Below are positions 33,690 through 43,291 of a stretch of 64,000 nt of DNA, piece by piece. The DNA comes from Obrimoposthia wandeli (Eukaryota). The DNA lies in the NCBI GenBank assembly GCA_977020255.1, contig CDROCS010002910.1:62001-126000 (forward strand). The letters are read 5' to 3'. The translations under genes and the position numbers were made by a program. Position 1 is the stretch's first letter; every line of letters starts with the position of its first letter. The notes under the pieces were generated by a model. It made no database searches. It saw nothing but the letters and a program-made list of their open reading frames with translations, and was not told the origin of the DNA.

Positions 33690-36600
33690 TTATTCTAAGA
33701 TTATTTTTTTGTTCAATTTCCCGTTTTTAGTTTCTAACTTAACAAGATAAACTCCTTTAGCTAATTTTGGTAAGGAAATATCTTTAACTCCATTAGATGT
33801 AAAAGAAGAATTTAGAACTTCTTTTCCTAAGAGTGAGAATAGCTTAAAAGAAACATCATTTTTAGATAAACCAGCAATTCTTAATGTAGCGTTATCAAGT
33901 TTATAGATGCTTATGTTTTTTAAAACTAAGTTTTTATCAACACTAAGTGCACTATTGGTTGTATGCATATAAAAACGACCAATTCCGTTTAAAGCTTCTT
34001 TTAAAGTTATCTTATAAGTACTATTTACTTCATCTAAACGTGTAAAAGTATTAGTTACTCTATCTTCTAAAAATAGTTTCAAATCAGAATCAAAATTAGA
34101 AACATTTAATGAAAAAGTAATTTCTTTACCACTTTCTGTATTTACACCAACAGGAACTATCATATTTTCAAAACCTGTATTTGGTAAAGCTTGTATAGCA
34201 AAATCTACTCCATCACTATTACTAACTAAATGCGTAAACACTCTAAAGTTATTACTTACTCCAGTAAAAACACCAACATCAGACCCCACATCTAAACCAG
34301 TTGTTCTATTTTGTATATATCTAATTTTTGTTGATGAGGTATTAGTTCCTTCATCAATTTTTAATATCATTTCAGGATAACTTGTATTATTCTTTAAAAA
34401 GATATTTCCTGTTTGATGCGTTTGCATTGCTTCAGTAAAACTTGCAGAAGTTCCTCCACCATCAGGTGCATGTACAAAGAATGCTTGCCCAGGAGCAATA
34501 AAGAAATCGTCATCTACAGATTTAACATCATAAGGAGTACTTCCGTTCCATAGGTAAACACCAGATTTCGCTGGGTCTAACGTACTTGCATCAATATTTA
34601 CTCTTAAAAAAGAATTAGTTTCATCTGTACTACTTCCTCCTTTTAGAGCAGCAGTATAAGGGCTACTAATTAAATTCCATCTATTTCCAGTAGGGTCATC
34701 TCCACCATCTGTAATAGCAATTGTTTCTCCTGCATTATTTACGTTTAAAGTACCTGTAAAATCTAAAGTACCAGCAGTTGTTTTTTTAACTGAATATCCC
34801 TTTGCTTTGGTGAAATTACCAGCTGCACCAATATTTCCAGTTGTGTAGTAACTCCAACGAGAAGCAGATACTTCCGTATTATCATAGAGTGCAATAGATT
34901 TATTAGTAGTTGTTCCACTAGTTAAAAGAGAACCAGAAAAGCCATTTATATCTTGTCCATTTACTGGAGCTCCAACTAAATGCCATCCTTCTGTTCCAAC
35001 ACCAGAGGTTGTTAAATATCTTTTATACGTTACATTCCCTGTAGCAGTTCCTTTTACAATTAAAGAACCATTTGTGGTGGCATCAGAATCTATATTTAAT
35101 GTTCCACCTTGGGTAAGGTTTCCATTTACAGTTAATGAGTTACCAGTTTGAATATTTAGCGTTCCTGTTATATTTAAATTGTTAATAGTAACAGAACTAA
35201 TATTTAGCTCAGGACTATTAGGAATAACAACATTATCTGAACTTATTGGTATTCTAGCTAAAGACCAATTACCTCCAACAGACCAATTACCACCTGCAGA
35301 TAAATAAGTATTGGTTTGATTTGCTTCTGATGTAAAACTTAAGTCTGTTGTAGCTGAAATACCTGCATAGTTATTGTTTGCAGCATCTTTAAAAGCAGTA
35401 TTATCTACTTGAACATAGTACTCAGTATTTAAATCTAAGTCAGATGTAGGATTAATTGTAGCTTTAGTTGTTGTTATTGAAACAGAACCAGAAGTAACTG
35501 CAATAGTTTCTACAGTACTGTTATCAGATGTTTTTTTGATAATAATATTTCCACTAGTTCCTTTGCTGATATTTTCAGAAAAAGTTAATTCTATGTTATT
35601 ACTAATAACAACATTAGTAGCATTATCTAAAGGAGAAGTTAGAGTTAAAGTTGGTAAAACACCATCAATTAATAAGGCCTTATTATCTCCTAAAGAGTTT
35701 GCTGCTCCTGGAGTTGGTAAAGTCAATGTTGCATCTTTATTACCAGAATCTCTTATACTTGTTCCTGCTGTTAATGAGTTTGTTGCAACATAATCTAAAT
35801 CTGCACTAGTATCTCCTGCTTGTACATTATAATTAAATTGTATAGTATTTGTTCCACTACCTGTACCATTATAGTTTATGGTTCTATTTGTTGTACCAGT
35901 TTCTAATGTAATTTGTGGTGTACCAGTTACAGTAACATTTTCATTAAAAGTTACGGTTACAATAACATTGTCGCCTGCTTTATAAGTTCCGTTTGCAGTT
36001 GTTGCACTTACGCTAGTTACTGTTGGTGCTACTGCACTTGAAATAACAGTAGTTCCATTGTTTGTATCTGTGTCTGTGCCATCATTAATAACAACTGTAA
36101 AAGTTGTAGTTTCTGATGTTGAACTTCTATTATCTGTAGGGTTAAAACTTAACGCTCTTAATTTTGCTTGTAAGTCTGCAGTTGTAGTACTTGCAAGAGC
36201 ATAAGGTCCTGTACCTGTTAAACCTGTACCAGATAAAACACCTTTAGCATTGTTGTCTAAAGTAATAGTTGCAGAAACATTATCTCCATCTGCATCTGAT
36301 GTTGTTATTGAAGAAAAAGGATTTAATGTAGCAGTATCATTTACATTTTGTCCTGCAGATGTGCCTCCAATTGTTGGTGCAGTGTTTGCAACATTTCCTG
36401 TTAGTTTAAGTTCGTCTATAGCAAATTCTTCACTCCCGGAATTAGCTCTTATTGTAATTCTGATATTTAATGTAGTTCCAGTACTTGCTAAAGTTTTTGT
36501 AATTTTTTGAAATGTTAGCCCGAGTGTAACAGTTCCGTTAGATAAACTATGGCCAGAAGCTGGACCATCACGTAGAAACTCTGTAACCTTATCAAATCCT

Positions 36601-37031
36601 CCTCCATTTATTTGAGTCTCGATTAATATTCTATCTGCTGCATCCCAAGCGAAAACATCAGCCGCTAAATCTATTGATAATTCCAGACCAGTATAACCTG
36701 TAATATCTATGCTAGACCATGTTAAAGATACTTCATCTGGAAATGATGACGCTCCTGCGTCTAAATCTTCTCCCATCAAATAACTCCCTGTATTCCCCGT
36801 ATACACAGGAAATCCCATAGCTGTTGGGGCCCCGTCAAAATCGGTATTAGTTCCAGCAGGATCATAGATTCCAAAATAATCACTAGAAGCACCTGTGAAA
36901 AATGGACTACTTTTGGTAAAACCAGAATCATTATTAAAGGATTCTAATAAGAGTGTTGTTTGAGAAAAAACTTCATTTTTAAATAATAAAGAAAATAATA
37001 AAGAAAATAAGATGAGTGTAATTTTTTTCAT
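33690..37031 (-). CDS. Secreted Ig-like-domain protein with T9SS type A CTD
   Basis: Signal peptide, N-terminal jelly-roll-like domain, Ig-like segments (APTVTSVS...YKAGD..VTVTFNE; LTFSENI..G...I.IKK..D...E.I). CTD ..FSLLGKEVL...LAKGVYLVKLET.NG..NKKIILE. Confidence 0.85.
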   Translation of the reverse strand: MKKITLILFSLLFSLLFKNEVFSQTTLLLESFNNDSGFTKSSPFFTGASSDYFGIYDPAGTNTDFDGAPTAMGFPVYTGNTGSYLMGEDLDAGASSFPDEVSLTWSSIDITGYTGLELSIDLAADVFAWDAADRILIETQINGGGFDKVTEFLRDGPASGHSLSNGTVTLGLTFQKITKTLASTGTTLNIRITIRANSGSEEFAIDELKLTGNVANTAPTIGGTSAGQNVNDTATLNPFSSITTSDADGDNVSATITLDNNAKGVLSGTGLTGTGPYALASTTTADLQAKLRALSFNPTDNRSSTSETTTFTVVINDGTDTDTNNGTTVISSAVAPTVTSVSATTANGTYKAGDNVIVTVTFNENVTVTGTPQITLETGTTNRTINYNGTGSGTNTIQFNYNVQAGDTSADLDYVATNSLTAGTSIRDSGNKDATLTLPTPGAANSLGDNKALLIDGVLPTLTLTSPLDNATNVVISNNIELTFSENISKGTSGNIIIKKTSDNSTVETIAVTSGSVSITTTKATINPTSDLDLNTEYYVQVDNTAFKDAANNNYAGISATTDLSFTSEANQTNTYLSAGGNWSVGGNWSLARIPISSDNVVIPNSPELNISSVTINNLNITGTLNIQTGNSLTVNGNLTQGGTLNIDSDATTNGSLIVKGTATGNVTYKRYLTTSGVGTEGWHLVGAPVNGQDINGFSGSLLTSGTTTNKSIALYDNTEVSASRWSYYTTGNIGAAGNFTKAKGYSVKKTTAGTLDFTGTLNVNNAGETIAITDGGDDPTGNRWNLISSPYTAALKGGSSTDETNSFLRVNIDASTLDPAKSGVYLWNGSTPYDVKSVDDDFFIAPGQAFFVHAPDGGGTSASFTEAMQTHQTGNIFLKNNTSYPEMILKIDEGTNTSSTKIRYIQNRTTGLDVGSDVGVFTGVSNNFRVFTHLVSNSDGVDFAIQALPNTGFENMIVPVGVNTESGKEITFSLNVSNFDSDLKLFLEDRVTNTFTRLDEVNSTYKITLKEALNGIGRFYMHTTNSALSVDKNLVLKNISIYKLDNATLRIAGLSKNDVSFKLFSLLGKEVLNSSFTSNGVKDISLPKLAKGVYLVKLETKNGKLNKKIILE

Positions 37032-37075
37032 AATATATTGGTTTAGTTTAAGTTTTAAAAGTGATATTATAAAAG

Positions 37076-37107
37076 AAAAAAAACAGGTATAACTACCTGT
37101 TTTTTTT
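37076..37107. terminator. A/T-flanked hairpin CAGGTA-TAAC-TACCTG (terminator and/or operator)
   Basis: Perfect inverted repeat with A8/T8 flanks between the tail-collar gene and the T9SS gene. Confidence 0.6.
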
Positions 37108-37122
37108 CAAAAAAGTAAATTC

Positions 37123-37752
37123 TTAACTTCTTGGTGGATAAAGACCTTCCATACATATTATATAATTAAGACCTAAACTTGGTTGTATATTGCTAAAAGC
37201 AACATTATTTCCTGTCATACCAACTGTTACGTCACCGCCTGTTGCAGTAATAGCTACTGGTGCAGTAAAAGGTTTTAAAGTTGTATCTGCAGCCTCAGAG
37301 CTATAAGCATTTACTACGTTTCCATTTTTTATTACTTCTTGAGTCGCAAAAACAGAACCAACACCTGGTACAGAAGTATCAGCAGAATCAGCTACCGCAG
37401 GTACAGAAACAGTCGCTTCTGCTGTTGCTGTAATACCTGTAACTAGAGCAGTATGGTTATGAGCTGGTAAATTTTTTGTAATTAGAGTTGTCGTTTCATT
37501 ACCCTCTTTCTCTCCTAATCTATAAGCTGATAATCCTGGTCCTGCTGAATTTCCTCCAGAGTTTACAGGTACTCTACCTCTTAAATCGGGTAAAGCAAAT
37601 GTAGTTCTTCCATCTCCACCATAAGTGGTTCCTAAAATTGAAAATAAAGATTGGTTTTGTGCGATTGGTAATAATTGCCCATTGCAGTAAGCCCAGTTTC
37701 TTGGAGCAAAATTTCCTGCAAACATTTTAATAATTCCGATGTACTCATCCAT
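37123..37752 (-). CDS. Phage tail-collar domain protein (MdpB/'microcystin-dependent protein' family)
   Basis: YIG.IKMFAGNFAP.NWAYCNGQLLPI.QNQ.LFSILGTTYGGDGRTTFALPDLRGR, LPAHNH, and C-terminal NIQPSLGLNYIIC.EGLYP.RS. Confidence 0.92.
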   Translation of the reverse strand: MDEYIGIIKMFAGNFAPRNWAYCNGQLLPIAQNQSLFSILGTTYGGDGRTTFALPDLRGRVPVNSGGNSAGPGLSAYRLGEKEGNETTTLITKNLPAHNHTALVTGITATAEATVSVPAVADSADTSVPGVGSVFATQEVIKNGNVVNAYSSEAADTTLKPFTAPVAITATGGDVTVGMTGNNVAFSNIQPSLGLNYIICMEGLYPPRS

Positions 37753-37784: not shown

Positions 37785-37881
37785 CAAATGTAGTTGTAAC
37801 AAATGATGAGGTTTAGAGTGTTAAATACTGAAAGTAAAAAAGGGTATAAATACTTATTTTATAAGTATTTATACCCTTTTT
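37785..37881 (-). promoter_or_regulatory. Tail-collar promoter (-7 TACATTTG) with upstream 21-bp perfect inverted repeat holding two 6-4-6 sites
   Basis: Minus-strand TACATTTG at 37785-37792. AAAAAGGGTATAAATACTTAT-TTT-ATAAGTATTTATACCCTTTTT at 37837-37881, which can also act as the response-regulator terminator. Confidence 0.6.
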
Positions 37882-37899: not shown

Positions 37900-38580
37900 C
37901 TACAGGTTAAAATCTGGCGTAATTTCTATTAATTTTTTTTGAATTCCATAAATAACTAAACCAGCTACATTTTTAGATTGCGTTTTTAAAAGAAGGTTAT
38001 TTCTATGCCCCTCTACCGTTCTTGGGCTTATAAAAAGTTTGTCGGCAATTTCTGCAGTTGTTTTTTGAGCACAAATTAATTCTAAAACATCTATTTCTCT
38101 TTTAGACAGTAGTTTTTTATCTAAATCGCTTTTTATACGTTTTCCACTAGATGATATAATATTCTCATGTATAATTGTTAATACTTTTTCATCATAATAA
38201 AAACCCTTATCATACACTTCATTAATTGTATGAACTACCGTTTTTGGGCTTGTGTTTTTAAGAAGATAAGAAGAAGCGCCAACATCTATCATGTTAGTAA
38301 TAAAAGATTTACCACCATAACTAGTAAGTGCAATTATTTTTATTTCTGGATATTTTTTATGAATAATTTTAGTAGCTTCTACACCATTAACTTCTGGCAT
38401 ATTTAAATCCATTAAAATTACATCTGGGAGCTCTTCTGTTTTATTAATAAAGGTTATTAATTCTTTGCCATTTTCTGCTTCATAAATGATGTTAAAATTG
38501 TCTTCTCTTTCTAATAAAAAACGAATTCCACTTCTAAAAAGCTGCTCGTCATCGGCAATTATTATATTAATTTGTTTCAT
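37900..38580 (-). CDS. NarL/FixJ (LuxR-HTH) family response regulator
   Basis: IIIADDE, DVILMDLNMP, ALTSY, YLLKN receiver motifs. LSKREIDVLELIC...T.EIADKLFISPRTVEGHRNNL HTH. Confidence 0.95.
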   Translation of the reverse strand: MKQINIIIADDEQLFRSGIRFLLEREDNFNIIYEAENGKELITFINKTEELPDVILMDLNMPEVNGVEATKIIHKKYPEIKIIALTSYGGKSFITNMIDVGASSYLLKNTSPKTVVHTINEVYDKGFYYDEKVLTIIHENIISSSGKRIKSDLDKKLLSKREIDVLELICAQKTTAEIADKLFISPRTVEGHRNNLLLKTQSKNVAGLVIYGIQKKLIEITPDFNL

Positions 38581-38593
38581 AATTTGGGGGCTA

Positions 38594-39385
38594 TTATATT
38601 ACAATGAAAATTTTAAAACCTTTACCTATTTCACTTCCAATACTATATTTTCCATTTAATAGGGAAACTCTACTTTCTATATTTTTCATTCCAAGTCCTT
38701 TCTTATTATCAATATTATTAGAATTAAAACCAATACCATTATCAGTATAATTAAAAATTAATTGATTGTTTTTTAAAGAAATGTTTATAGTACTATTATT
38801 TGCTTTTCCGTGTCTTACAGAGTTGTTAATTAACTCTTGCGTAATTCTAAAAAGGTGTAATTCGTTTTGTGGTATTAAATGTTTTTTTGGATAGTTAATA
38901 GTATATTCAATATTAATTTTTCTGCTATTATTAAATTCATCTGCCAATTCTTCTACTGCATCTTTAAACCCAAATTCTTCAAGAATTGGGGGCAATAAAT
39001 TATGGGCAATTTTTCTTGCACTTTCTAGGGTTTTCTCGGTTGCTTTTAAAATACCGTTATTAACTATTTTAAATTCTTCTGGTGTTAATTCTCCATCTTT
39101 TAAAAGATTTGCATTCAGGTTAATCACATTTAACTTAGAGCTAATGTCGTCATGTAAATCTTGTGCAATACGTTTGCGCTCTTTTTCTTGAGTTATAATA
39201 ATAGATTGTATAATTTCTTTTTGATGCGTTATTTCGAGATTTTTTTTCTCAAGTTCTTTTTCCACTATTTTTTTTCTTGAGAAAAAGAAAAATAATAGTA
39301 AAGAAATTCCCATAATTAGGAGTAACAGAACACTTATTATAACTACAGCAATCACTTGGTCTTGTTTAGCAACTAATTCTTCCAT
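38594..39385 (-). CDS. HisKA_3 sensor histidine kinase with one TM and no evident sensory domain
   Basis: TM at about aa 12-36. QEKERKRIAQDLHDD H-box, FRITQELINNSVRHG N-box, DNGIGF and GLGMKNI G-boxes. Confidence 0.93.
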   Translation of the reverse strand: MEELVAKQDQVIAVVIISVLLLLIMGISLLLFFFFSRKKIVEKELEKKNLEITHQKEIIQSIIITQEKERKRIAQDLHDDISSKLNVINLNANLLKDGELTPEEFKIVNNGILKATEKTLESARKIAHNLLPPILEEFGFKDAVEELADEFNNSRKINIEYTINYPKKHLIPQNELHLFRITQELINNSVRHGKANNSTINISLKNNQLIFNYTDNGIGFNSNNIDNKKGLGMKNIESRVSLLNGKYSIGSEIGKGFKIFIVI

Positions 39386-39407: not shown

Positions 39408-39523
39408 CAAAATTACGGAAAAATATTTTTACACAAGATAATGCTAACAAAGTGAAATAAAAAGCCTGAAGTGAAAATCAGGGGTTTATACTTGTTTTTG
39501 TATTCTTAGTATAAACCCCTGAT
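39408..39523 (-). promoter_or_regulatory. HK/RR promoter (TTG-18-TAATTTTG) and upstream inverted repeat with two 6-4-6-like sites
   Basis: Minus-strand TAATTTTG at 39408-39415 and TTG at 39434-39436. ATCAGGGGTTTATACT...AGTATAAACCCCTGAT at 39477-39523. Confidence 0.55.
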
Positions 39524-39525
39524 TA

Positions 39526-40167
39526 TTATCTCTTTTTTAAATGTATGTGTTTTCTAAAATTTTTATACCATTCTATAAAAACCATAATTTGAAAAATTAA
39601 ATATAGGAATGCATTTATATCCCAAACATATAATTTAAGTTCTCTAGAATCTATGTTTCCTAAAGTGAAAATTAATGTACTACAAAGTGTATAAACAAAG
39701 AAACCAGAGTTAAAGTAAATGTATTTTTTGTCTTTATAGTCATCTATCTTTTTTACAAAAAAGTAAAAACTATAAATTAACAATGGTATGGATGTTAAAA
39801 CAATTTCTAACTGATTCCATCTTTTAAATGCTTCAGGATAATTATATAGATATATAATAAAATACAAAGCAATTACAAGAGTTAAAATCCAATTTAAGAT
39901 CTTAAATTTTTTGAAACTCTGTAATGTTGAAAAGAACAGACTTAAAAAAATAAACTGACCTATAAAAAAATAATGACTTAAAAATAAGTTGTTTATTCCT
40001 TTTGTACTAAAATTATTAGAAACTAATTGAATAACAGAACAAAGCACTAAATACATAATAAAGTATTTTATAGCTTTGTCTTTTTTAGTATAACTTAGAG
40101 TAAATACTACTGTATTTAGAATTAAAAAAAAGTACCCTGCATTTATTATGAAATCATCGAAGATCAT
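39526..40167 (-). CDS. Multi-pass (about 6-7 TM) membrane protein, paralog 2
   Basis: Hydrophobic segments throughout. Shares NL(F/H)L.H..FIGQF.FLS.FF, E.V.TSIPL..YS, FNSG.F.Y..CSTLIF and W..NA.LYLI.QI.V...WYKNFRK with 40295-40927. Confidence 0.8.
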   Translation of the reverse strand: MIFDDFIINAGYFFLILNTVVFTLSYTKKDKAIKYFIMYLVLCSVIQLVSNNFSTKGINNLFLSHYFFIGQFIFLSLFFSTLQSFKKFKILNWILTLVIALYFIIYLYNYPEAFKRWNQLEIVLTSIPLLIYSFYFFVKKIDDYKDKKYIYFNSGFFVYTLCSTLIFTLGNIDSRELKLYVWDINAFLYLIFQIMVFIEWYKNFRKHIHLKKR

Positions 40168-40176
40168 TTAATTAAA

Positions 40177-40290
40177 TCAGTTTAATGGGGTTTTTGTATC
40201 ACAGAATTCAGTATGTGGTCTTGAAAAATTATAAATAGGATCACTTTAAACTACTAAAGTAAATCCATCTTTAGAAGAAATCATATCTTT
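40177..40290 (-). pseudogene. Decayed 3' remnant of a second PCPxxC gene
   Basis: Translates KDMISSKDGFTLVV*SDPIYNFSRPHTEFCDTKTPLN*. Aligns ungapped with the intact C-terminus KDMISSNDGETLDADSGAIFDATKPCPDSCDFTSPLMQ* (17 of 37 positions identical), with an in-frame stop and no 5' part. Confidence 0.85.
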
Positions 40291-40294
40291 TATA

Positions 40295-40927
40295 CTATTC
40301 ATTAATCTTTCTAAAGTTTTTATACCAATCTATAGAAACTAAAATTTGATAAATCAGGTAAAGGATTGCATTAAAGAGCCAAATATAAATTTTTATGTCC
40401 GATTTTAAACTACCAGCAACAAAAATTAAAGTACTGCATGTAATGTAAAGGAACAAACCTGAGTTAAAAAAAAGAAATTTTTTGTTATCACTATCTATTC
40501 TCTTTACTAAGAAAATTAAACTATAAGCAATTAATGGAATAGAAGTAACTACAACTTCAAAAATATTATGTTCAGTTAAAAATTCTGGATAGATAAAATA
40601 GCAGACACCTAAAGAAAACAATGCCATAAATAAATAGATTCTTATAATATTAGAAAGTAACTTATTTTTAAACTCTAGTATAAAAAAGAAACTTAAAAAA
40701 AGAAACTGACCAATAAAGTAAAAGTGCGTCAAATGAAGGTTTGACTCTTTTAGACTATGAAGGTAATTCATTCTTAACTGAATGATTAAAACATACAATA
40801 AGTAAAATGCAATAATTTTAAAAGCTACCGTTTTTTTACGGTAGCTTTTAAAAAAAAGAAATGTATTTAAAATTAAAATAATATACCCTAAATCAGCTAT
40901 TATATTAAAAATTTCTTTAGAATCCAT
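40295..40927 (-). CDS. Multi-pass (about 6-7 TM) membrane protein, paralog 1
   Basis: Same conserved motifs as 39526-40167; starts 1 bp after the PCPxxC gene stop. Confidence 0.8.
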   Translation of the reverse strand: MDSKEIFNIIADLGYIILILNTFLFFKSYRKKTVAFKIIAFYLLYVLIIQLRMNYLHSLKESNLHLTHFYFIGQFLFLSFFFILEFKNKLLSNIIRIYLFMALFSLGVCYFIYPEFLTEHNIFEVVVTSIPLIAYSLIFLVKRIDSDNKKFLFFNSGLFLYITCSTLIFVAGSLKSDIKIYIWLFNAILYLIYQILVSIDWYKNFRKINE

Positions 40928-40928
40928 T

Positions 40929-41312
40929 TTATTGCATTAAAGGACTCGTGAAGTCACATGAATCTGGACATGGTTTAGTTGCATCAAAAATAGCACCACT
41001 ATCAGCATCTAGAGTTTCACCATCATTAGAAGAAATCATGTCTTTTCCATTTTTATCTACGCCTACAAACATTAATTTTTCTTCAAAAATAGTTTCTCCT
41101 GTTTTTTTATCTTCAGATTTTTTAACGCCTAAATATCCTCTAACACTTACAGCACCTTCTTCAATTACTTCTTTTAAGTCTATTAAAGGAATTGTAAAAG
41201 CTCTACAATCGAAGTATTTATTATAAGAAGCTTCATCATCTCTCCATTCTGTAGCCCATTTTTGAGCTTTTTGTAAGCTGATTTTGTTAATTTTTTTTGG
41301 TTGTTTTTCCAT
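40929..41312 (-). CDS. Small cytoplasmic hypothetical protein with C-terminal PCPxxC motif
   Basis: 127 aa, no signal peptide. ISL..AQKWA.EWR, RAF.IP..DL, VRGYLG, EKLMFVGVD..GKD and D.TKPCPDSCD.TSPL. From recollection this family recurs next to two-component genes in Bacteroidota; not verified here. Confidence 0.8.
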   Translation of the reverse strand: MEKQPKKINKISLQKAQKWATEWRDDEASYNKYFDCRAFTIPLIDLKEVIEEGAVSVRGYLGVKKSEDKKTGETIFEEKLMFVGVDKNGKDMISSNDGETLDADSGAIFDATKPCPDSCDFTSPLMQ

Positions 41313-41380
41313 GTTTAATAGTATTTAAGTTTATAAATAATTTGGGTTAGGCTATAAATCTAAATAAAAATAAAGAAAAA

Positions 41381-41461
41381 GGAGGGTTAATACTTCTATT
41401 TATATTGATAAACACGTGTTTTTACCTGTTTTTTTAATCTGTTTTTAGGTGTTTTCCTTTA
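41381..41461. promoter_or_regulatory. Phased array of 6-4-6 pseudo-palindromes upstream of the PCPxxC gene
   Basis: GGAGGG-TTAA-TACTTC (41381), CACGTG-TTTT-TACCTG (41413), TAGGTG-TTTT-CCTTTA (41446); spacings 32 and 33 bp. Confidence 0.5.
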
Positions 41462-41494
41462 TTAGGTGTTTAAAAAAAAGTGTATTTTCGTTAC

Positions 41495-43291
41495 ATGCCT
41501 ACATCTTTAGAACTACAAATAAAAACCTTACCAAATGAACCAGGAGTCTATCAATATTTTGATAAAGAAGATGTAATTATTTATGTAGGAAAAGCTAAAA
41601 ATTTAAAGAAAAGAGTTGCTTCTTACTTCAATAAAAACCATGAAAATGGTAAAACCAGAGTTTTAGTAAAAAAGATTGTTCGTATTAAACATATTGTTGT
41701 TAATACAGAAACAGATGCTTTATTATTAGAGAACAATCTTATTAAAAAATACAAACCACGTTACAATGTTTTATTAAAGGATGATAAAAGCTATCCCTGG
41801 ATTTGTATAAAAAAAGAACGTTTTCCTAGAGTATTTATGACACGTAGAGTTATAAAAGATGGATCAGAATATTTTGGGCCTTATACTTCTGTAAAAACAG
41901 TTAGAATTTTATTAGATTTAATAAAGGAGTTGTATCCGCTAAGAACATGTAAGTTCGATTTAAGTCATCAGAATGTAAATGAAGGTAAATATAAAGTCTG
42001 TTTAGAATATCATTTAAAAAACTGTAAAGGTGCTTGTGAAGGTTTAGAAACAGAAACTCATTATAACAACGCCATTGTAGAAATTAGAAATATCATAAAA
42101 GGAAACTTTAAAGAAAGTTTAGAGAAGTTTCAAGCAATGATGTTGGTTTTTGCTGAAAACATGGAGTTTGAAGAAGCGCAGAAGATTAAAGAGAAATTGT
42201 ATTTATTAGGCAATTATCAATCAAAAAGTACCATTATAAATCCGTCTATAAATAATGTAGATGTGTTTTCTATTATTTCGGATGAAACACATGGATATGC
42301 AAACTTTTTAAAGATTTCTAACGGATCAATTATTCAATCTCATACTACAGAAATCAAGAAAAAGTTAGATGAAACCGATAAAGAATTATTAGAACTATTT
42401 ATTGTTGAAATTAGACAACGCTTCGATTCTCAATCTCCGGAAATTTATGCGCCTTTTAAAGTTAATTTGGGTGAAAACGTAAAAGTTACTGTACCTAAGT
42501 TAGGTGATAAAAAACGCATTGTAGAACTCTCTGAAAGAAATGCAAAGTATTACAGAATGGAGCAATTTAAGCAAGTACAAATTGTTGATCCAGATAGACA
42601 TGTAAAACGAATTATGGCGCAAATGAAAAAAGATTTGCGTTTACATGTAGAACCACGTCATATAGAATGTTTCGATAATTCTAACATTCAAGGAACGCAT
42701 CCTGTTGCAGCTTGTGTTGTTTTTAAAGACGGGAAACCGAGTAAAAAAGAGTATAGGCATTATAATATTAAAACAGTTGAAGGACCAGATGATTTTGCTT
42801 CTATGGAAGAGGTTGTTTTTAGAAGGTATAAGCGATTGTTAGAAGAAGAGCAACCTTTGCCACAATTAATAATTGTCGATGGAGGAAAAGGACAATTGTC
42901 TTCTGGTCTAAAAGCCTTAGATGATTTAGGTTTAAGAGGTAAAATTGCGATTATAGGAATAGCAAAACGTTTAGAAGAAATTTATTATCCTGGAGATCCA
43001 ATTCCGTTGTATTTAGATAAAAAATCTGAAACATTAAAGATTACACAGTACTTAAGAAACGAAGCGCATAGGTTTGGAATTACGTTTCATAGAAATAAAC
43101 GTAGTAAAACTGCAATTCAATCTGAATTAGAGCAAATTCCTGATGTTGGAACACAAACTATTACAACTTTATTGCGTAAATTTAAGTCGGCAAAACGAGT
43201 TAAAGAAGCTTCTTTTGATGAGTTAAAAGAAGTCATTGGAAACTCAAGAGCTACAAAGGTTTATGAATATTTTCATCCTCAGAAAAAATGA
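41495..43291 (+). CDS. uvrC: Excinuclease ABC subunit C
   Basis: GIY-YIG LPNEPGVYQY...IYVGKAKNLKKRVASYF, IECFDNSNIQG, PQLIIVDGGKGQL, RNEAHRFGITFHR and HhH tail. ATG 41495 preferred to GTG 41480. Confidence 0.98.
   Translation: MPTSLELQIKTLPNEPGVYQYFDKEDVIIYVGKAKNLKKRVASYFNKNHENGKTRVLVKKIVRIKHIVVNTETDALLLENNLIKKYKPRYNVLLKDDKSYPWICIKKERFPRVFMTRRVIKDGSEYFGPYTSVKTVRILLDLIKELYPLRTCKFDLSHQNVNEGKYKVCLEYHLKNCKGACEGLETETHYNNAIVEIRNIIKGNFKESLEKFQAMMLVFAENMEFEEAQKIKEKLYLLGNYQSKSTIINPSINNVDVFSIISDETHGYANFLKISNGSIIQSHTTEIKKKLDETDKELLELFIVEIRQRFDSQSPEIYAPFKVNLGENVKVTVPKLGDKKRIVELSERNAKYYRMEQFKQVQIVDPDRHVKRIMAQMKKDLRLHVEPRHIECFDNSNIQGTHPVAACVVFKDGKPSKKEYRHYNIKTVEGPDDFASMEEVVFRRYKRLLEEEQPLPQLIIVDGGKGQLSSGLKALDDLGLRGKIAIIGIAKRLEEIYYPGDPIPLYLDKKSETLKITQYLRNEAHRFGITFHRNKRSKTAIQSELEQIPDVGTQTITTLLRKFKSAKRVKEASFDELKEVIGNSRATKVYEYFHPQKK

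Follow-up and report, generated by a model that had tools for sequence, protein, structure and literature searches.

The locus described here raises the question of what the short spacer between two paralogous membrane-protein genes once was, and how it came to lie there. In the window, the 64-kb stretch of DNA that was analysed, uvrC (41480-43291, plus strand) is divergent from a series of minus-strand genes. The first of these are PCP1 (40929-41312), an intact gene of the PCPxxC family that encodes 127 aa ending in PCPDSCDFTSPLMQ, and MEM1 (40295-40927), which encodes a 210-aa seven-transmembrane (7TM) protein of the MEM1 clade. They are followed by the 127-nt spacer (40168-40294, minus strand) and by MEM2 (39526-40167), an intact gene for a 213-aa 7TM protein of the MEM2 clade, with a terminator-like hairpin (39465-39482, minus strand) 3' of MEM2 that closes the PCP-MEM operon. 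The same strand then encodes a histidine kinase (38594-39385; 263 aa, a single transmembrane segment, no input domain, HisKA_3 and HATPase_c) and a NarL/LuxR-type response regulator (37900-38580; REC and GerE), with all four Pfam domains exceeding their cut-offs. For all genes of the PCP-MEM locus the nearest relatives are those of Polaribacter.

Read on the minus strand, positions 40177-40290 of the spacer translate to KDMISSKDGFTLVV, an in-frame stop, SDPIYNFSRPHTEFCDTKTPLN and a terminal stop, and this translation aligns without gaps to residues 90-126 of PCP1 (17 of 37 identical), corresponding to the 3' third of a PCPxxC gene (codons ~90-127). The in-frame stop is a TAA at 40248-40246, the PCP of the family motif has become PHT (40218-40210), which leaves P-H-T-E-F-C-D with Cys115 and Pro116 gone, and codons 1-89 are missing. 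Between the terminal TGA (40179-40177) and the MEM2 ATG (40167) the distance is 9 nt, much as 1 nt separates the TAA of PCP1 (40931-40929) from the MEM1 ATG (40927); a second TAA (40170-40168), directly abutting the MEM2 ATG, is a possible alternative original stop. The spacer, the ungapped alignment, the defects and both spacings had been described in the initial annotation, and every one of them was reproduced. Upstream of the KDMISS box the similarity cannot be extended (approximately 8 of 15 matches, no better than chance), and the deletion or recombination junction falls at about 40291-40297, where it adjoins the TAG of MEM1 and an unusually short MEM1 tail that ends in KINE.

A length of 37 codons and an AT-rich genome both invite the explanation that the resemblance of the relic arose by chance in intergenic DNA, or that it is an assembly artefact. 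The probability of either is negligible. Compared with PCP1 in all six frames, the spacer attains a best ungapped BLOSUM62 score of 77, whereas 1000 dinucleotide-preserving shuffles of the spacer have a mean of 22.7 (sd 3.0, maximum 38) and none of them reached 77 (z=18), so that the alignment withstands the shuffled-sequence control proposed in the initial annotation; at the DNA level the score is 80 versus 22.2±2.5 in shuffles. The tblastn search suggested there, with PCP1 as query against the whole window, returned the relic as the sole secondary match (47% over 36 residues, E=7e-5). The relic is also detected, over profile positions 85-121, by an HMM that represents 40-odd sequences of the family (i-E 2e-5 to 2e-6). 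The contigs of the source run agree fully across the relic, and an independent metagenome, from an invertebrate gut, yielded a contig whose sequence is the same throughout 40214-40374, covering the junction between the MEM1 stop and the relic. Together with colinearity into MEM2 in several genomes and an orthologous relic in a second lineage (both described below), these shuffle, HMM and independent-contig controls refute the chance and artefact readings.

The family to which the relic belonged is an uncharacterised one of the Bacteroidota, with open reading frames of ~105-140 codons and a C-terminal consensus consisting of the KDMISS box followed by I[YF]D[FA][ST]xPCPxxCDxxSPLN. Within it, C115-P116-x-x-C119-D120 is invariant and C36 nearly so. 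The relic retains the C-terminal profile match (17-23 of 37 identities to members) and the position typical of the family, being 9 nt upstream of the 7TM gene MEM2, with the HisKA_3 kinase and NarL regulator genes next in order; it lacks a complete ORF and the CPxxCD motif. Given the PHTEFCD motif, the in-frame TAA and the absence of codons 1-89, the spacer is therefore the dead 3' third of a PCPxxC gene, a pseudogene fragment rather than a functional member of the family.

The obvious candidate for the parent of such a fragment is the neighbouring PCP1, and the initial annotation had accordingly treated the relic as its duplicate, a view that comparison with relatives does not bear out. In the family alignment the relic keeps consensus states (IY.FSRP...CD...PLN) at positions where PCP1 is altered (IFDATKP..., ...SPLMQ), and it has neither the derived D-A-T motif nor the SPLM tail found in the PCP1 clade. 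It shares 21-23 of 37 residues with the PCP proteins of four related loci (L011, L003, L002 and L007) versus 17 of 37 with PCP1, and in a protein tree it is placed beside L011, L002 and L003, away from PCP1, with AU tests rejecting no alternative placement (p 0.2-0.57), 37 residues being too few. More telling is the arrangement of the DNA. L052, a TARA contig whose uvrC is 92% identical to that of the window at the nucleotide level and 96% at the protein level, has the order uvrC, PCP, MEM2-type gene, and the 3' end of its PCP gene plus the start of its MEM gene match the relic plus the start of MEM2 at 132 of 190 positions without a gap. In BLAST comparisons with L052, L002 and L003, the second block of similarity begins at the first base of the relic and continues through MEM2, the kinase and the regulator, as far as the contigs permit. 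Because the DNA is colinear with these three loci, an observation regarded as decisive, the relic is orthologous to the PCP gene located immediately before MEM2-type genes and is not a recent copy of PCP1. An intact PCP gene is found 0-10 nt upstream of the MEM2-type genes of L002, L003, L052, L055 and L057, and in L055-L058 and one JGI contig the pairs are intact, with 8-10 nt from the PCP stop (after SPLN) to the MEM ATG. The claim that MEM2 has lost its own partner is upheld, and in the window MEM2 is now without a partner gene.

The loss appears to be recent in comparison with the age of the paralogs. MEM1 and MEM2 are 45% identical with a dS of ~1.5, from which it follows that the paralogy is old, and the two genes fall into separate clades (SH-aLRT 99 and 100) that each have members in several species. 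The smallest synonymous distance of the relic, by comparison, is that to the PCP gene of L052 (dS 0.33, dN 0.31, omega ~0.95), and is of the same order as the uvrC dS between these genomes (0.37-0.40). Over the same 37 codons, functional genes of the PCP2 type, i.e. those preceding MEM2-type genes, show omega values of 0.15-0.6 (median ~0.26). A dS close to that of uvrC and an omega of ~0.95 therefore show the relic to be an old pseudogene that has drifted approximately neutrally for roughly as long as the relatives have been separated, the paralogs being far older still. MEM2 itself is intact and under purifying selection (dN/dS about 0.2-0.27) though its adjacent PCP gene died.

A second copy of the relic is found in L054, a metagenomic contig from ENA whose MEM2 is 76% identical to that of the window at the protein level. 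The 5' part of this array consists of a MEM1-type gene, a copy of the uvrC-PCP promoter region, an intact PCP gene and a 7TM gene of the type of the first MEM gene of L011 (L011_M1), here called Mx; the Mx gene, which ends in RKINE, is followed in the 3' part by the relic, MEM2, the kinase and the regulator. The promoter-region copy (L054:607-736) is a second one inside the L054 array, and is 90% identical to window positions 41313-41441; the unit inserted in L054 is promoter plus PCP plus MEM. The L054 relic reads KDMISSKDELILDGKNDFIYYFSRRYTEVCYPTHN followed by a stop, and has the 5' breakpoint, the KINE tail of the upstream gene and the Pro116 to Thr replacement in common with the relic of the window, from which it differs in the damage at Cys115 and in a 6-nt deletion. 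Identity between the two copies is 75-76%, in a setting in which neighbouring genes have pS values of 0.30-0.40 and noncoding spacers are 59-67% identical. The divergence of the relics is thus about that of silent sites and their breakpoint is shared, which indicates that the truncation predates the split of the two lineages and that the stub is approximately neutral. The gene upstream of the common junction is of the MEM1 type in the window and of the Mx type in L054, and so the gene bodies have been exchanged while the junction was retained.

Retention of the stub in two lineages could also be taken to mean that it still serves MEM2, either as a short peptide gene or as an expression element (for ribosome loading, translational coupling or promotion of transcription). 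The annotation of L054 calls a 33-codon ATG-initiated ORF at this position, the 24-25% divergence between the relics is slightly below the pS of the neighbouring genes, and the final nucleotides before the MEM2 ATG are conserved. Such a function is nevertheless very improbable, because the ORF that starts from the Met of the KDMISS box in the window has 12 codons, the Cys/Pro motif is broken differently in the two copies, which are also separated by the 6-nt indel, and the dN/dS of the relic relative to a functional ortholog is ~1. Furthermore, the stub is absent upstream of many MEM2-type genes, and a promoter scan gave no enrichment.

The relic could have arisen in two ways, which agree that the stub is the remainder of the PCP gene adjacent to MEM2. 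On the account that is favoured here, by a modest balance of probability, a complete second pair stood at this site and a later deletion left the stub of PCP2. In the ancestor, PCP-7TM units would have formed an array that preceded one kinase (single-TM, HisKA_3) and one regulator (NarL-type), and PCP2 would have stood directly before the MEM2-type 7TM gene as its partner, in the tight layout that is seen across Polaribacter and Flavobacterium. A deletion that began in the tail of the 7TM gene upstream and ended at codon ~85-89 of PCP2 would have removed the start and the first two-thirds of the gene. Since then the stub has drifted and MEM2 has stayed under purifying selection; either the one remaining PCP protein (PCP1) would suffice, or MEM2 would work without one. 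Complete arrays of this kind are extant (L022, and the second unit of L054 with its own promoter copy), and in L023 a full-length PCP gene with four stops has been caught decaying in place beside an open MEM gene. Against this account, in none of the genomes was a MEM1-type gene seen to be followed, at this very position, by an intact PCP2, the nearest MEM2 relative (81% identical at the protein level, seen as a gene table only) has a MEM gene that abuts MEM2 with no relic, MEM-MEM tandems without a detected PCP remnant occur in L011, L014, L017, L046 and L044, and an origin in one step takes fewer events.

Such a one-step origin is a serious possibility, credited with rather less than an even chance, and would mean that the stub was born truncated. 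A single recombination would have joined a 7TM tail to approximately codon 85-89 of the resident PCP2, either by unequal or illegitimate exchange that produced a tandem duplication of the PCP 3' third plus the 7TM gene, or by homology-facilitated illegitimate insertion of foreign PCP plus 7TM DNA anchored in uvrC or in the 5' part of PCP. The 5' two-thirds of PCP2 would then be continued or replaced by the upstream PCP gene, two complete PCP genes would never have coexisted at the site, and the upstream pair, now PCP1-MEM1 in the window and PCP2-Mx in L054, would have been swapped later by allelic exchange. In its arrangement, the window corresponds to the L052 locus with ~755 bp (PCP 3' third plus MEM) added at the KDMISS box, and the 40-nt KDMISS box of L052 aligns with both copies in the window. 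There is a single novel junction, at which the tail of the upstream MEM gene is clipped (KINE), and MEM2 has its full tail and terminator, as expected for the junction of a tandem duplication. The intact PCP gene of L054 and the MEM2-preceding PCP of L052 share 94% identity at the protein level (dS 0.39), as though they were one gene, parted from MEM2 in L054 by the inserted DNA. Swapping of upstream gene bodies is evident from the different MEM types behind one junction in the window and L054, and a chimeric MEM gene in L051, with a MEM1 body and a MEM2-type tail, shows that crossovers do occur at the WYKNFRK box. However, MEM1 and Mx are only 45-50% identical to MEM2, and the one-step origin consequently requires extra replacements or a foreign donor; the extant arrays of complete units and the decay in place in L023 also weigh against it. 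Of the claim that a complete second PCPxxC gene once stood here, what remains firm is that the remnant is a genuine PCPxxC sequence, one recombination explaining the structure equally simply. The deletion of a once-complete PCP2 nevertheless remains the favoured account.

In either case the stub lies in a locus whose content turns over rapidly. Among 43 related genome loci, drawn from Polaribacter, Flavobacterium and Aquimarina, 42 have PCP followed by MEM, kinase and regulator, and close relatives (uvrC 92-94% identical at the nucleotide level) carry the first pair alone, the second pair alone, or both: L048 and L051 have PCP1, MEM1 and the kinase only, L052 has PCP2 and MEM2, and the window has PCP1, MEM1, the relic and MEM2. 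The locus of L044 (PCP 87% identical at the protein level) contains PCP1, a MEM1 with an N-terminal frameshift, a decayed MEM2-type copy and MEM2; the decayed copy (L044:6020-6412) occupies 393 bp of the MEM1-MEM2 spacer, with recognisable N- and C-terminal pieces and internal deletions. The sole MEM gene of L051 (L051:519-1163) has a MEM1-type body, 81-98% identical to MEM1 of the window in nucleotide sequence, and from the WYKNFRK box onwards (the last ~60 nt and the terminator) it is 95% identical to the MEM2 tail of the window, and is thereby a chimera with its crossover at that box. Two full-length PCP pseudogenes lie beside open MEM genes, namely the first PCP of L023 (L023:4847-5194; four in-frame stops) and that of L034 (L034:6007-6360; stops and a frameshift); both loci come from MAGs, in which stops and frameshifts may include sequencing errors. 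In PCP1 itself, the contigs of related strains (runs X1 and X5) join position 41083 to ~41296 and thus omit ~208-217 nt, and the gene tables of sibling contigs of L054 list a 45-aa ORF that ends 1 nt before a 209-aa MEM gene; the ORF and the gap probably represent an internally deleted allele of PCP1.

These loci also permit an assessment of the proposal that PCP and MEM form the duplicated unit. The prevalence of the PCP-MEM order, and the two intact tandem pairs in L022, an arrangement that the initial annotation had proposed to look for in relatives, support the existence of the pairs as units of two genes, but do not show that the pair is obligatory in duplication. The independent duplication of membrane genes, named at the outset as evidence to the contrary, does occur: L024 contains a recent tandem duplication of a ~230-bp spacer plus MEM (L024:6391-8159; 93% identical over 713 bp) that includes no PCP sequence, and the decayed copy in L044 is of the MEM2 type. 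Additional MEM genes with no detected PCP remnant are present in L009, L011, L013, L014, L017, L020 and L046. When other MEM-MEM and MEM-kinase spacers were scanned for relics against shuffles, only those of the window and L054 were significant; the L013 spacer was marginal (6 of 200 shuffles, uncorrected), and those of L011, L014, L009, L044, L024, L020, L001 and L007 gave no PCP relic by the shuffle test. Nor do the PCP and MEM families show the co-phylogeny expected of cognate partners. The distances of PCP and the adjacent MEM are correlated in a Mantel test (r=0.34, p=6e-4), to an extent similar to those of PCP and the kinase plus regulator (0.30), and the partial correlation given UvrC distance is not significant (r=0.07, p=0.24), which means that PCP-MEM co-divergence is no greater than that arising from shared history.

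The features of the encoded proteins give some indication of what such pairs might do. PCP1 has no signal peptide and no transmembrane segment, and PCP proteins have no match in Pfam or NCBIfam. The AF2 model (pLDDT 81) predicts a fold with moderate confidence, conservation extends over the full length, and the model finds no fold match in the PDB (best E 0.2, TM ≤0.24) and, in AFDB and the ESM Atlas, matches to uncharacterised Bacteroidota proteins only. Larger relatives containing PCP domains are encoded between the MEM genes and the kinase at L032:7346-8122, L020:3736-4509 and L024:8249-9172; two of them are predicted lipoproteins of 257-258 aa with two PCP-like domains that end in [EA]CPDLCD, and a 307-aa relative has VPCPDVCGGDGC and a sub-threshold match to CFI-box-CTERM. 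From the lipoprotein versions it follows that the PCP domain is predicted to occur outside the cytoplasm as well.

For the membrane proteins, a hydropathy scan found seven segments in MEM1 and six in MEM2, and the AF2 model of MEM2 (pLDDT 88.9) has seven long helices and one short helix, with fold matches to GPCR-type bundles (TM 0.45-0.58). By the positive-inside rule the topology is N-out/C-in, with loops of 5-14 residues and a highly conserved cytoplasmic EWYKNFRK tail. MEM2 matches 7TMR-DISM_7TM (PF07695) at 18.3 bits, below the gathering cut-off of 29 (E=0.0023; profile positions 13-201 of 205), MEM1 does not match PF07695, and 11 of 45 MEM relatives match this family at E≤0.01, the best at 5.3e-6, with scores that are near the threshold or below it. 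A sequence search of the PDB with a MEM profile returned nothing, and a literature search combining 7TMR-DISM, histidine kinase and the truncated term Flavobacter found no papers. Among RNA runs, none could be shown to contain the locus.

The most likely working model is that of a split 7TM-receptor/kinase sensor in which PCP is a putative Cys-based (redox or metal) cytoplasmic modulator. The PCP protein, as a Cys-containing modulator, would dock onto the 7TM proteins, either at their EWYKNFRK tail or at their cytoplasmic face, and these would gate the input-less kinase through membrane contacts. Outputs of the system may include a phage-tail-collar-domain protein (209 aa) and a 1113-aa protein, which are encoded downstream of the two-component system at 33690-37752; the tail-collar neighbour recurs 3' of the regulator in most Polaribacter loci, and the counterpart of the large gene (33690-37031) in a relative's contig carries a Por_Secre_tail (T9SS sorting) domain. 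Between the response regulator and the tail-collar gene lies a perfect hairpin with a 20-bp stem (37838-37880), resembling a bidirectional terminator. A bolder proposal, and an unlikely one at present, is that the PCP-7TM pairs are interchangeable specificity cassettes, i.e. matched modulator/receptor modules on one input-less kinase, which strains swap, stack and prune. Recombination in related Polaribacter strains would in that case take place at the conserved boxes, KDMISS in PCP and WYKNFRK in the 7TM tail.

In several respects the locus resembles systems that are already known. As in tandem paralog arrays that evolve by birth and death, a 5'-truncated, stop-containing and neutrally drifting fragment lies beside intact paralogs, copy number varies among close relatives, and a chimera (L051) and decayed neighbours (L044, L023) are found; unlike such arrays, the units here consist of two genes (a small soluble protein and a 7TM protein) that feed one two-component system, and different relatives retain different units. 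With the 7TMR-DISM receptors, which Anantharaman and Aravind are said to have classified, the MEM proteins share seven transmembrane helices, the N-out/C-in topology, an association with histidine kinases, a GPCR-like bundle in the AF2 model and weak, near full-length profile matches in 11 of 45 members. In contrast to those receptors, they are stand-alone proteins of 210-213 aa with no DISMED domain and no fused output, the kinase is the product of a separate gene, and the proteins of the window remain under the Pfam gathering threshold (18.3 versus 29 bits).

Intramembrane-sensing kinases with accessory membrane proteins are exemplified by LiaFSR and BceRS-AB. The one-TM input-less HisKA_3 kinase, the NarL-family regulator and the adjoining membrane-protein genes, which could supply the signal, are reminiscent of these, but the accessories here are a 7TM protein and a soluble protein with a Cys motif, without homology to LiaF or ABC transporters. 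The agrBDCA and comQXPA loci are polymorphic cassettes of signal, processing and receptor genes, and ComA is a NarL-type regulator. The present locus likewise has, ahead of a conserved kinase-regulator pair, adjacent genes with alternative alleles that diverged anciently and segregate in close relatives, and its regulator is of the NarL type, as is ComA. Unlike the short leader-peptide precursors of those loci, however, PCP is a conserved, folded domain of 110-130 aa (pLDDT 81), the MEM proteins have no Pfam or NCBIfam match to AgrB or ComQ, the kinase has no polytopic sensor, and Mantel tests give no specific PCP-MEM co-divergence.

The relic is therefore an ordinary pseudogene fragment in an uncharacterised and unusually plastic signalling locus. 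Its value is that of a dated footprint of turnover in a widespread cassette of the Flavobacteriia (PCPxxC, 7TM protein standing alone, HisKA_3 kinase lacking an input domain, NarL regulator), in which pairs of a small protein and a membrane protein come, go and are reshuffled at a fast pace, close relatives differ in which of the anciently diverged pairs they have, and the array appears to be reshaped by recombination at two conserved sequence boxes. It also illustrates that a 7TM paralog can stay under selection after the death of its adjacent small-protein gene, and it may guide experiments on how specific the partnership of small protein and 7TM protein is. If the cassette proposal were true, one such exchange would have left the relic as its footprint, and the signalling system, with its split 7TM receptor, would be one not described before.
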